A stretch of DNA of 64,000 bases, taken from sequence record ON286972.1. One strand, written 5' to 3'. Below, in pieces: positions 15,076-53,170 of this stretch. The notes under the pieces were generated by a model, which worked only from the letters and a program-made list of their open reading frames with translations, searched no databases and had not been told where the DNA came from. Made by a program: the position numbers and the translations under genes. Every line of letters begins with the position of its first letter. Position 1 is the first letter of the stretch.

Positions 15076-15155
15076 GTGGTTGACTTCGGTCAGCCATTTT
15101 GCTATTATATATTCATTGAGAGATAGCTCACTAGCCCACAGGGTGCGGAAGTGTA
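15076..15155 (+). ncRNA. hairpin-embedded promoter + two-hairpin GGGUGC unit
   Basis: GTGGTTGAC-TTCG-GTCAGCCAT; TATTAT; GAG/CUC hairpin; CUAGCCCACAGGGUGC. Confidence 0.55.
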
Positions 15156-35253: not shown

Positions 35254-35307
35254 GATATGGGCTTTTTTCGTTTTGGTATTGACATAGAAGACCAAAGCTG
35301 TTATCAT
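35240..35307 (+). promoter_or_regulatory. terminator hairpin followed by sigma70 promoter
   Basis: GCCTGTATC-GTAA-GATATGGGC-TTTTTT; TTGACA-17-TATCAT. Confidence 0.7.
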
Positions 35308-38240: not shown

Positions 38241-38262
38241 NNNNNNNNNNNNNNNNNNNNNN
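38241..38262. other. assembly gap (22 N) with low-complexity flanks
   Basis: N-run; homopolymer-rich flanks at 38165-38340 look like low-quality sequence. Confidence 0.95.
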
Positions 38263-49321: not shown

Positions 49322-49954
49322 ATGAGTTCAAAAAGAAAACCAATTTCAAAGTACGTTTTTCATCGCCTAGAATATAAGCACTGCATTGCGTATGCACGAG
49401 CCTTAACGGACATATTACCACGTCTGAAAGATGATAAGTTCCTTGAATGTTATGACATGCGTTTTCATAACAATGTTCTTGAGTACATAGAATCAGATGA
49501 TAGTGAGTTGAATGAAGTATGGCTTGATTTCAGTCCTAGTGGTTTAGATAAAAATAGAGTTGGTAATTTGGGACCATTTTTTACGCACTGCTTGAACTTC
49601 GATTTGTCAGATAAAACATTAGTACTGGACAGTAATGAGGTACTTAGATTAAACCTCAATGATATGGATTATTCAGAAGAATCATTCTTTCAATATAGTT
49701 TATTATATGAACCGAATGATTTATTATATACTATTGTTTTCCCATATCTACATGAGCACCTTAAAGGTACTAAAGTTCAAAGAGCAGACATTGCCTTTAG
49801 TTTAGTAAATTTATTCAAGTACAGTGATGTGTTCAAAGAAATATGTATTGAAGGTGGTTACTTCGATGACCTTGCTGATTTGAATAACATGGCGTTTGAA
49901 AATGATAATTATTTTAACGATACCTATATAGGCGGTTCGAGGATAATGAAATGA
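49322..49954 (+). CDS. FQxS family C protein
   Basis: EESFFQYSLLY. Confidence 0.8.
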   Translation: MSSKRKPISKYVFHRLEYKHCIAYARALTDILPRLKDDKFLECYDMRFHNNVLEYIESDDSELNEVWLDFSPSGLDKNRVGNLGPFFTHCLNFDLSDKTLVLDSNEVLRLNLNDMDYSEESFFQYSLLYEPNDLLYTIVFPYLHEHLKGTKVQRADIAFSLVNLFKYSDVFKEICIEGGYFDDLADLNNMAFENDNYFNDTYIGGSRIMK

Positions 49955-50502
49955 GTCTCCCATTAACAATAAACCCAGTACTAAAAGATCTATCTAAAGT
50001 TATTATGAACTTTTTTCCTATTGTACTACAAGATATAAAACCTATATCAAATCTTGGTTCATGTTATATTCGACACAGTAATAATAAAAACGGTTCTATA
50101 GGTACTTTGTACATTAGTGATAGTTCATTGTTTCTTTTGCACCCTGAGTTATCAGATGAAGAAATACAAGATGGATGCTCGGAGGCACAGAATCGTGTAC
50201 TCACACGTTATCCATATGTGTACATAAGCAGCATTAAACATAAAAATCTTGCTAATAACTTTTGCCAATGCAATCACGGTGATAACTTAATAGATTTAAA
50301 TGTTGACGATGGGGTGCTTTTCCAGTACAGTACTCTATATGATCAGTTAACAATGGATATCATTGAGTTGGATAAGTTAGTGCGTGATTACATCCCTGAT
50401 GGTTTCTATCTTACAATGGATCTTAATGTACTGAATTCCGTAATGGAACAAGGCACTCTACCAAACATTCTGAGAGACTTACGAGCATTTAAAAGACCCT
50501 GA
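49951..50502 (+). CDS. FQxS family C protein
   Basis: DGVLFQYSTLY. Confidence 0.8.
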   Translation: MSLPLTINPVLKDLSKVIMNFFPIVLQDIKPISNLGSCYIRHSNNKNGSIGTLYISDSSLFLLHPELSDEEIQDGCSEAQNRVLTRYPYVYISSIKHKNLANNFCQCNHGDNLIDLNVDDGVLFQYSTLYDQLTMDIIELDKLVRDYIPDGFYLTMDLNVLNSVMEQGTLPNILRDLRAFKRP

Positions 50503-50515
50503 TGGGTCTTTTTTC
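50493..50515 (+). terminator. intrinsic terminator
   Basis: AAGACCC-tgat-GGGTCTT + TTTT. Confidence 0.8.
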
Positions 50516-50524
50516 GTTTATAGG

Positions 50525-50553
50525 TTGACATTAGTAATGTAGAATGTTAGAAT
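50525..50553 (+). promoter_or_regulatory. sigma70-type promoter for the MCP operon
   Basis: TTGACA-17-TAGAAT with TGn. Confidence 0.8.
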
Positions 50554-50584
50554 ATTGTAACCTATTTAAAAGAGAGCGTATTTT

Positions 50585-51133
50585 ATGGACAGCATTGTAA
50601 ATATTATTGAATGCATGATTTATATTTTTAAAAACAGTCCTGATAATGAGACTGTTAATTTTGAGTTAGGTGAATTAAATATCAACCCAAAAGAATCTCC
50701 ATCAGTATATTCTAATATTACATTGTTCATTAGTGGTTTAGGTTATGTCGTAAAGATCATTAATGCAACACAACGTAGACAAGAATACAAGATGGAAATT
50801 CTACGCGGAGATAGTGAAATTCGTCTATATAATGTATCACGCTACACTAAGATACTGGTAAAACATTCTTATGAAGATGACGAGAAGTTAGCTGTAGCTA
50901 AAATTGATTCAAACACTTTCAAAGAACAAATGTTCATGGCTGCTATGTCATATGATCAATTAACTTATAATAAGCTAGAAATGGGTTATAAATTACTTAG
51001 GTTATTAGAAGATCATTATGAAATTACAATTATGGACAAATTGCTTACCAAAAGCCAAGAGGAACTAGAGAAAATGCATTTGTTATTAAAAAAATATATT
51101 GATGATAATTTAAATTATGGAGAAGTACGTTGA
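50585..51133 (+). CDS. hypothetical protein (divergent family C)
   Basis: KEQMFMAAM at the motif position. Confidence 0.8.
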
Positions 51134-52542
51134 AAAGTAATTTAGAAAATATACGCAAAAAAGCCGATAATTTAGTACTATGTTGTATAGGGGCTTTATT
51201 TGCTGTTACTTTAGTTTCCGGTGTTGTTCATGGTAGTTTTATTATTGCACTTATCGGTGCAGTTTTATTATTAGTAATGCTAACTCCTTTACTATTTGTT
51301 GAAAGTAATGCATTCACTCGAACGTTATTAAGTATAAATGTGATGTGCTGGAGTGCGTTACTAATACATCTTGGCTTAGGGATGGTGGAATGGCACTTTA
51401 CAGTTTTTGTCTTTTTAAGTTTATTGATTGTATGGCGTGACTGGCGTTGTGTATTAGCAGGTTCAGTACTGATAGCAATACATCATTTATTATTTGGATT
51501 GTTGCAGGGTGCTGGAATTCCAATATTATTCGTGTTTTCTTTTCACCATATTTCGTTATGGCACATTATAGAGCACGCAATATATGTAGTAGTACAGGCA
51601 ATAGTTCTGATGTACGTTGCGTACATTATGGAGAAAGATGCAAATGAAGCAGATGAAATTCAACGAATTGCAAGATCAGTGAATTCTGAAGACGGCAATA
51701 TTACTTTAGAAATACAAAATAATCATTTCAACTCCGAATTTGCACAGACTTTTAGTAAAACAATATCAGCTATGCGTGAGGCAATTGAACAAGTACAAAT
51801 TACAGTTCAGTCAATGAAAAGCAACTCCTATCATCTCGAAAGTAAAAGTAATGATTTAGCTTTCAGAACTGAAACACAAGGACAGGCACTCACTCAAATC
51901 GCTGCTGCTATGGAAGAATTAAGTGCTACATCTGCAAATACATCTGATAACTCCAATACTGCAAAAAGTATGGTTAAAACTACAAAAGAATCCAGTACTA
52001 ATGCAATTGAAAGTATTAATAATTGCAAAGAGCAGATGAATAGAATTAAGGAAGATTCTAATGCTATAGTTGCTATACTCAAAAATATAGAAACTATTGC
52101 TTTCCAGACTAATATTCTTTCTTTAAATGCAAGCATTGAGGCTGCTAAAGCGGGTGAACATGGACGTGGATTCTCTGTTGTTGCACAGGAAGTTCGTAAC
52201 TTAGCAATGAAATGTGATACATGTAGTAAAGAAATTAAAGAAATCGTTGATAACTCCGTAAAAAACAACAACCAAGGAATTGAACAAATCAACGAGACAG
52301 CAAGTGATATTGATTCTATTGTAAAAAATGTTGATTCTCTCTTGCAGTTCATTGATGATTTAGCTATAATGGCTGAACAACAAAGTATTGCAATCCTTCA
52401 GGTCACTGAGAGTGTTAATATGATGGACCGTTCAGTACAGCAAAATGCGGAGCATGTCAAGGACACAATGCTGATGGTAGACAATCAACAGTCTGAAGTA
52501 CATGCTTTACAAAAAGCCACTTCGATTTTTAACGTGAAATAA
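51130..52542 (+). CDS. methyl-accepting chemotaxis protein
   Basis: Multi-TM His-rich sensor (EWHF, RDWR, IHH), HAMP-like linker, canonical [37 protein letters not shown] signalling tip; TTG start. Confidence 0.95.
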
Positions 52543-52547
52543 TTTTA

Positions 52548-52587
52548 AAGCCAGGGTATTGACTCTGGCTTTTTTCTTTGCTATTAT
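52548..52587 (+). terminator. intrinsic terminator containing the -35 of the next promoter
   Basis: AGCCAGGG-tatt-GACTCTGGCT-TTTTT; TTGACT-17-TATTAT. Confidence 0.75.
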
Positions 52588-52615: not shown

Positions 52616-53170
52616 ATGGACAATTACCTATTAATCTTACAAATTTACAACGAACTGGGAAAACTTCTTGAAACGTGTAATTCACCGGGACGTAAATTAA
52701 GAATCGGTTTCGATTATGAAATTGAATACACAGGAGAGGGTATTGCAACGCAGCAGATGTTCACAGAAGAAAATAAAACTATTCTGTGCATTTACCCACA
52801 TGAAGGTGATGAGGAAGACTGTGTTGTTGATTTTTCATATGACAGTTCTTGGGCTTTTATTTCACGTAATCCTCGAATGAAAGAGGCAGTGGATTACAAA
52901 GAACCATCATATGATCCTATTGCGTTGTTCAGTACTGAGAATTTAGAAGAACAAAATTTCCAGAGTTCTGTAACTCACGATAAATTAATCACTGATGCAC
53001 TTACGATTGAAGCTTTAGCACGTAACTATAAATTTGATTTCAATCTCAATAATTATTATATGTCATATAGTGCAACAGCATCATTACTCACTGATGATCA
53101 ATTAGTAGTATTACTCAAGGACTTGAAAAACTACGCACAAACGAGAAAAGAACATGAAAACACTAATTGA
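52616..53170 (+). CDS. FQxS family C protein
   Basis: SD GAGG; EEQNFQSSV. Confidence 0.8.
   Translation: MDNYLLILQIYNELGKLLETCNSPGRKLRIGFDYEIEYTGEGIATQQMFTEENKTILCIYPHEGDEEDCVVDFSYDSSWAFISRNPRMKEAVDYKEPSYDPIALFSTENLEEQNFQSSVTHDKLITDALTIEALARNYKFDFNLNNYYMSYSATASLLTDDQLVVLLKDLKNYAQTRKEHENTN

Follow-up and report, generated by a model that had tools for sequence, protein, structure and literature searches.

In this study, we analysed the first 64 kb of sequence record ON286972.1 (Escherichia phage A4), hereafter the window, in which record and window coordinates are identical, and found that it carries an intact gene, A4_379, for a genuine methyl-accepting chemotaxis protein (MCP) of the 36H class. 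The gene is under strong purifying selection, by its sequence it is an old capture from an Enterobacterales bacterium, and its product has lost the glycine hinge that its bacterial relatives keep. The account to which we give somewhat better than even chances is that this receptor joins the receptor arrays of the host, where the output of CheA would be set by the signal that a histidine/glutamate cluster in its membrane sensor detects, while the loss of the hinge would alter the switching. A change in the steering of infected cells is probably its role. GenBank already names A4_379 'methyl-accepting chemotaxis protein', so that the annotation was known; what is new here is the phage-specific loss of the hinge, the evidence for selection, the derivation of the gene from outside the host species, and a family of sensors that has no name. 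That phages reprogram host metabolism is known; we know of no case in which a receptor encoded by a virus directly controls how its host navigates, and our search of the literature found no functional study of any phage chemoreceptor. With an intact, selected gene that occurs in many samples and a product of E. coli receptor length, the question can be tested in the best-understood chemotaxis system available.

Receptor architecture and the lost glycine hinge

The 470-amino-acid open reading frame (ORF) matches MCP models (NCBIfam, E 5.6e-50; phrog_8572, E 8.6e-52) and solved structures of the E. coli receptor Tsr (E 3e-36), and PF00015 (MCPsignal) is recorded for a near-identical copy of the A4 protein. 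When the record was searched with the MCP profile phrog_8572, this was the single match, with no second MCP. AlphaFold2, run on 22 and then on 49 aligned relatives, modelled the whole protein with a mean predicted local distance difference test score (pLDDT) of 86, and the sensor alone with a pLDDT of 89 and a predicted template modelling score of 0.83. The modelled helices span residues 4–33, 37–56, 61–81, 86–102, 105–127 and 143–184, followed by two, 203–340 and 342–465, that form the long antiparallel coiled-coil hairpin. HMMER aligned residues 193–469 with residues 241–517 of Tsr free of gaps, and the kinase-control module is therefore exactly of E. coli receptor length. At the hairpin tip, 31 of 42 residues are identical to those of Tsr; the tip contains an invariant block, and the trimer-contact positions of Tsr are kept, with R388 present as K.

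An earlier note, made from the letters alone, had described a complete MCP with a His-rich polytopic sensor, an intact CheA/CheW-binding tip and no NWETF pentapeptide, and all of these observations hold: the frame is uninterrupted, nine His residues lie within the first 150 residues, six helices appear in the sensor models, and the C-terminus (...ATSIFNVK) ends three residues beyond the Tsr-aligned end with NWETF not present. The HAMP-like linker that it proposed stands in part. The models give a helix (143–184), a connector (185–202) and a second helix from residue 203, and HMMER aligns the region through the Tsr HAMP domain, from Tsr residue 219, with three residues missing, but no Pfam HAMP match (PF00672) is recorded for the clade.

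Positive charges are placed at the N-terminus and in loops at about residues 60–64 and 103–106, from which we read a topology of six transmembrane (TM) helices with both ends cytoplasmic. The polar residues D13, E87, H89, R103, H118, H119, Q126 and H149 show little or no variation across 70 bacterial relatives, and the phage protein retains every one of them. Judged from the helix models, the outer halves of helices 4, 5 and 6 contain E87/H89, H118/H119/Q126 and H149, respectively; this His/Glu cluster may form a single metal- or haem-binding site, or a switch coupled to protons or redox state. The sensor does not qualify as an MHYT domain (PF03707), since there is no Pfam match and the conserved His residues sit in helices 4, 5 and 6 and not in alternate helices; for the phage copy and all close relatives the precomputed Pfam lists MCPsignal (PF00015) only. 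An exhaustive search with a six-TM profile returned 5,529 representative clusters at E <= 0.001, 2,915 of them at 1e-10 or better, and most of the matches were about 470–520 residues long; the mere five proteins returned by a word-based search with the sensor region alone reflect the sensitivity limit of that method, and the profile search is the informative one. In the ESM Atlas the sensor fold is found ahead of histidine-kinase, GAF, HD-GYP and cyclase outputs, and, because the same fold precedes so many output types, the sensor is a modular input domain. The phage MCP offers a way into this very large family of six-helix membrane sensors, which so far has no name. Exhaustive structural alignment gave as the best matches of the sensor the six-TM domains of the membrane adenylyl cyclases AC9 (6r3q) and AC5 (8sl3) and of Pseudomonas aeruginosa ImcA (8wcn), with Z of 11.2, 10.8 and 10.7 over 182–191 residues, and Z of 7.4 or less for the remaining matches. 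The three proteins share with the phage sensor a six-helix bundle leading into a long signalling helix; they differ from it by a root-mean-square deviation of 5–8 Å at 10–13% identity, and for helical bundles a Z below about 13 may show a common arrangement only.

The methylation positions of Tsr read E-T, T-Q, E-E, K-D and Q-Q in the phage protein, which leaves one canonical pair. The altered methylation helix that had been pointed out before is real in that residues 254–263 diverge where Tsr has LEETAASMEQ, but it is not a phage-specific change: the bacterial relatives have a similarly sparse methylation pattern and the same altered helix, and it is therefore a trait of the whole family.

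The glycine hinge is a different matter. It is conserved in MCPs but does not define the superfamily, and its role is still debated. In all four phage copies the three hinge positions read A, I and A, where 67–69 of 70 bacterial relatives have Gly. The hinge glycines of Tsr are G340, G341 and G439, and substitutions at these residues impair or abolish chemotaxis (PMC6606802); the hinge is thought to permit the ON–OFF transition and the bends that array packing needs (PMC6606802; PMC6628036). Among the 79 columns with at least 95% conservation in bacteria, the phage protein agrees at 63, and most of the 16 departures are conservative. It loses five of the 12 conserved Gly columns, and the chance that all three hinge sites fall among these five is 0.045, which is suggestive, although AT pressure may contribute. 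Because the hinge is gone, switching is probably altered, and the phage MCP represents a natural experiment on the glycine hinge.

Origin, residence and selection

The nearest full-length relatives of the phage MCP are 483-amino-acid MCPs of Enterobacterales (Enterobacter, Pseudocitrobacter, Pantoea, Siccibacter, Kluyvera, Scandinavium, Buttiauxella and others) with 37–40% identity, followed by proteins of Burkholderiales at about 31%. The earlier note had asked for a phylogeny against host MCPs. A maximum-likelihood tree built from 72 proteins grouped both phage sequences with the Enterobacterales clade, with a support of 100 in the Shimodaira–Hasegawa-like approximate likelihood ratio test, and their stem measures 2.55 changes per site; the tree does not resolve the placement at the base of this clade, and the tree program warned of long-branch and composition effects. 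To judge from these sequences, the gene is one captured long ago from an Enterobacterales bacterium. The known host of A4, E. coli, lacks this receptor type, because neither the sensor DNA of a Citrobacter/Scandinavium-type homologue nor the phage cassette DNA had a match in 5,426 complete E. coli genomes, and no Escherichia was found among the best 80 of 228 species-level matches. Nor was the MCP gene found in other phage records, and a scan of IMG/VR with the sensor profile gave no relative.

The composition of the gene is that of the phage. Its GC content is 34.5% against 34.8% for the window, with a GC content at third codon positions (GC3) of 25.5%, whereas the Enterobacter homologue has a GC content of 57% and a GC3 of 67%; its codon use tracks that of the neighbouring genes (r = 0.92). 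Amino-acid composition is shifted as well, FYMINK residues accounting for 30% against 18% and Gly for 3.4% against 5.4%. The palindrome AGTACT occurs three times in the gene (51174, 51465 and 51994), a density of 2.1 per kb that is like that of the neighbouring genes and six times the expectation from base composition. Across the window, 273 AGTACT sites are present against about 21 expected from base composition; none lies at 26–28 kb or 32–38 kb, and the first 24 kb hold 10–20 sites per 2 kb. Taken together, the phage-like composition, codon use and AGTACT density, the long tree stem and the occurrence of the gene in the same context in independent copies support well, on sequence grounds, a long residence in the phage, as the earlier note had proposed from the AT content and AGTACT sites.

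A4, three independent public contigs and four further public runs all carry the gene intact and with the same surroundings. Among four phage copies, every one of them intact, 33 of 40 variable codons are synonymous, and within the sensor part this is true of 16 of 18. A4 and one public copy differ by 14 synonymous and five non-synonymous changes (binomial P 7e-6 for so few non-synonymous), and the contigs from the four further runs by 24 and four, free of indels and of any junction that bypasses the gene. Scaled to 295 synonymous and 1,115 non-synonymous sites, non-synonymous change runs at about 0.05 of the synonymous rate, and the gene is under strong purifying selection. The stretch is present in 20 runs from 15 studies, including bovine gut, fertilizer, aquatic and wastewater samples. 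Host contamination, which the earlier note had named as a finding that would refute its reading, is excluded by these data, as is neutral hitch-hiking.

Proposed role in the infected cell

MCPs join mixed receptor arrays and set the activity of CheA. Given the length in common with Tsr, the identity of the tip at 31 of 42 residues and the purifying selection, it is plausible that the phage protein acts on host chemotaxis. In the sequence of events that we propose, the host RNA polymerase would transcribe the gene, together with an upstream ORF, early in infection; the MCP would insert into the inner membrane through its six helices and dimerise, and its Tsr-like hairpin tip would let it enter the CheA/CheW receptor arrays of the host. 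CheA activity, and with it the swimming of the infected cell, would then be governed by the input to the His/Glu cluster in the outer part of helices 4–6, most probably a metal or haem that binds there or a signal tied to redox state or protons, and without the glycine hinge the switching would probably be altered. Phage A4 was described with E. coli LF82 as its host and comes from farm animal faeces in Ireland. It reaches a high titre without lysing this strain in broth, for which its authors suspect an atypical infection strategy, and the paper leaves chemotaxis unmentioned (PMC9355613). A long-lived infected cell would allow time for a behaviour-modifying gene to act.

Like Tsr and Tar, the phage MCP has the full kinase-control length, the conserved tip and trimer contacts, and a Glu-Glu methylation pair at the Tsr 310/311 position; unlike them, it has six TM helices in place of the periplasmic four-helix ligand domain, a divergent HAMP region, non-canonical methylation sites 1, 2 and 4, no NWETF and a hinge that reads A, I, A. 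With the uncharacterised 483-amino-acid MCPs of Enterobacterales it shares the full-length architecture, the invariant sensor residues and the sparse methylation; these proteins, however, are chromosomal, encoded at 57% GC and intact at the hinge, whereas the phage copy has a very long branch in the tree, an AT-biased amino-acid make-up and no hinge. Aer of E. coli has no periplasmic sensing domain and no NWETF and works inside mixed arrays. The phage MCP matches Aer at E 2.9e-25, but Aer senses through a cytoplasmic PAS domain with flavin adenine dinucleotide and has a two-helix anchor, whereas the phage protein has six TM helices and no PAS domain. HtrVIII of Halobacterium salinarum combines six TM helices with an MCP signalling domain and acts in aerotaxis with a proposed haem-binding membrane part, as summarised in a later paper (PMC13401364, citing Brooun et al. 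1998); its likeness is one of six-TM topology alone, and in function it may be the closest parallel, by analogy only, to a sensor that is embedded in the membrane and bears His residues.

Several points weigh against this account. With one canonical methylation pair and no NWETF, adaptation would need neighbouring receptors or be absent, and an MCP without its hinge may signal abnormally or fit arrays poorly. Docking of the tip dimer with E. coli CheW lends the account weak support, with a score of 0.56 against 0.19 for the best control, at least 59% agreement in contacts between runs and a partner pLDDT of at least 72. In the calibration, 51 of 78 solved complexes attained the docking mark, as did two of 108 mismatched pairs; at scores of 0.60 or less only five of the 78 solved complexes did so, along with all four passing mismatches (of 180), and the pass may reflect only likeness to solved homologous complexes. 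A Foldseek search of the sensor against the PDB returned nothing at E <= 0.001 and thus no clear fold match among solved structures. The gene neighbourhoods of the bacterial relatives are not conserved and give no functional hint: in Cupriavidus the neighbours are other MCPs, in Paraburkholderia there is an MHYT-GGDEF-EAL gene and in one metagenome-assembled genome there are flagellar genes, while the Enterobacter soli homologue lies directly after exbB-exbD and is followed by two small family-less ORFs, a DUF7943 gene and a UPF0114 gene. Among the public runs that hold the stretch there is no RNA run, and a steering role presupposes that infected cells continue to swim.

A more specific form of the account is that the phage gives its host a new sense, a His/Glu sensor on a hinge-less stalk placed in E. 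coli arrays, which would steer a still-swimming cell toward conditions favourable to the phage or toward new hosts. We regard this as possible but no more than tentative; if true, a virus would be manipulating the behaviour of bacteria by way of their own senses. The earlier note had inferred that the phage rewires or jams host chemotaxis, and these two readings can be told apart in part: the retention of the invariant sensor residues and the almost entirely synonymous polymorphism of the sensor favour a stimulus-dependent use, whereas the loss of the glycine hinge favours an altered or locked output. The latter would fit a stiff receptor of fixed output that enters host arrays and jams chemotaxis, with the kinase locked on or off regardless of the stimulus, and that might hold infected cells in place or change the bias of flagellar rotation. 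This main rival, which we consider rather unlikely, is in keeping with the replacement of the hinge glycines by A292, I293 and A391, fixed in four copies, with the 0.045 chance that the lost Gly columns include all three sites, with the effect of hinge substitutions in Tsr (PMC6606802) and with the single canonical methylation site and missing NWETF. Yet a pure poison needs no sensor, and here all invariant sensor residues are kept and sensor variation is synonymous in all but two of its codons; the poor methylation pattern is common to the bacterial relatives, and AT pressure has lowered Gly in the protein generally, so some of the loss may be drift.

Lower still in probability we place a role outside chemotaxis, be it a sequestration of CheA/CheW unrelated to steering, a polar membrane scaffold or a joint action with the orphan ORF A4_378. 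Co-transcription and translational coupling with that ORF, the many kinds of output that the sensor fold drives in bacteria and the atypical infection by A4 without visible lysis in broth (PMC9355613) would agree with such a role, but the part best conserved with Tsr is precisely the tip for CheA/CheW and trimer contacts, the phage genome has no other phrog_8572 match and one bacterial relative adjoins flagellar genes. That the gene is a functionless hitch-hiking host gene or mis-assembled host DNA has hardly any probability, for only the general rarity of such phage genes and the many MCP matches in phage collections that are bacterial contigs speak in its favour, against a gene 51 kb inside a 355-kb record between phage genes, with phage composition, with surroundings that recur in independent assemblies without any junction that bypasses it, and with a non-synonymous to synonymous ratio of about 0.05.

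The two-gene unit and its genomic setting

The coordinates of the features of the gene and its surroundings are collected in Table 1. The earlier note had placed the MCP in its own operon bounded by a promoter and terminators. The promoter and both terminator hairpins were recovered, and the bounded unit is real, but it contains two genes: the order is terminator, sigma-70 promoter, A4_378, MCP, terminator. The MCP is thus not alone in its operon, since A4_378 lies in the same interval (50493–52587) and its stop overlaps the MCP start. Taken as a whole, promoter-like and terminator-like sites are not enriched in the window over shuffled sequence, and only the few strong ones count. The sigma-70-type promoter with its extended -10 suggests transcription by the host RNA polymerase, that is, early in infection. 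The only homologues of A4_378 are near-identical phage copies, with a weak match to phrog_36809, and it shows no likeness to the neighbours of the Enterobacter MCP homologue.

Table 1. Features of the MCP gene and of the transcription unit that contains it, in window coordinates.
Feature	Position	Strand	Basis or detail
Intrinsic terminator, hairpin and T-run	50491..50512	+	9 pairs, 4 GC; closes the upstream unit ending with A4_377
Sigma-70-type promoter, TTGACA-17-TAGAAT, extended -10 TG	50525..50553	+	11/12 matches
A4_378, orphan ORF, 182 amino acids	50585..51133	+	TGA stop overlaps the TTG start of the MCP
Ribosome-binding site, GGAG	51119..51122	+	7 nt upstream of the TTG start
MCP coding sequence, A4_379, 470 amino acids and stop	51130..52542	+	TTG start, no internal stop
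Membrane-embedded sensor, residues 1–170, six TM helices	51130..51639	+	AlphaFold2 model, conservation
HAMP-like linker, residues 171–222 (helix, connector, helix)	51640..51795	+	Tsr alignment and AlphaFold2 model
E262-E263, only canonical Glu-Glx methylation pair (Tsr E310-Q311 equivalent)	51913..51918	+	Alignment
A292-I293, replacing the N-helix hinge pair (Tsr G340, G341)	52003..52008	+	Gly in 69 and 67 of 70 relatives
Hairpin tip, residues 320–362 (trimer contact, CheA/CheW surface)	52087..52215	+	Tsr alignment
A391, replacing the C-helix hinge residue (Tsr G439)	52300..52302	+	Gly in 69 of 70 relatives
Intrinsic terminator closing the two-gene unit	52547..52572	+	11 pairs, 5 GC, T-run
Promoter of the next unit, TTGACT-17-TATTAT with TG	52559..52587	+	Overlaps the descending arm of the terminator

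The regulatory elements of the unit are in the phage's own style, because its upstream junction is nearly repeated at 35279 and its downstream promoter resembles a family of elements at 15–24 kb. A T-rich terminator tail followed by a TTGACAT...TG.TA...T module is present at both 35259–35307 and 50505–50553, which suggests that this module is a reusable unit boundary of the phage. The elements at 15–24 kb are near-identical 29-nt promoter-like sequences (TTGACTCCGGTCAGTCCCTTTGCTATTAT and a variant) at 15080, 17846, 21155 and 23914 on the plus strand, spaced 2.8–3.3 kb apart and followed by conserved sequence; the promoter at 52559 is similar to them.

In having its own promoter and terminator, in lying between phage genes and in being absent from related phages, this host-derived accessory gene is like a phage moron or auxiliary gene. 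Classical morons belong to temperate phages and act in lysogens; A4, by contrast, is a virulent jumbo phage, and its cargo is a sensory receptor. Full-length MCP-like ORFs annotated as hypothetical are also carried by two other isolated jumbo phages, Vibrio phage Yong XC31 (QAX96201.1, 610 amino acids) and phage MaAM05 (WMU93215.1, 508 amino acids). They have only the signalling domain in common with the A4 protein (about 30% coverage) and differ in their N-termini, and from their sequences they look like independent acquisitions; a pattern search did not find the tip motif in the MaAM05 ORF. A preprint lists MCP, CheR and CheY among the genes of Nitrosospira phages. Many of the MCP matches in the phage collection were bacterial contigs filed as phage (Salmonella and E. 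coli whole-genome shotgun sequences; short unannotated records), and a tally of phage MCPs that relies on collections of this kind would be inflated.

Phage A4, to which a translated search assigned the MCP ORF at 100% identity, has a genome record of 355,528 bp and is listed as a distant relative of Asteriusvirus with an undefined genus (PMC13070987). The MCP gene lies 51 kb into this record, with phage genes on both sides, in a long co-directional run of small genes. Related phages have about 90% DNA identity to A4 at 5–25 kb, and the MCP region is unshared with them even as protein. Neither the 6.2 kb around the MCP gene nor the proteins A4_377, A4_378 and A4_380 had a match in other phage records, and no insertion point can be defined. 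Scans of the 64-kb window for tRNA genes and Rfam families were empty, and defence-system models gave weak coiled-coil noise only.

Much of the surrounding sequence belongs to one paralog family. Iterated searches with a hidden Markov model (HMM) assigned to it 45 ORFs of the window, of about 110–210 amino acids, which have an EE-x-x-FQ-x-S motif and lie at 1914–2585 and 30736–60412 on the plus strand; their pairwise identity is only about 15–20%, and the members that were tested had no relatives in other phage records. A4_378 was considered as a further member and rejected (HMM score -3.9, hhalign probability 0.2%), and neither it nor the MCP belongs to the family. The two-gene unit is flanked directly by family members at 49951–50502 and 52616–53170 and thus interrupts their array. 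A run of 22 N, either masked sequence or a gap, is present at 38241–38262.

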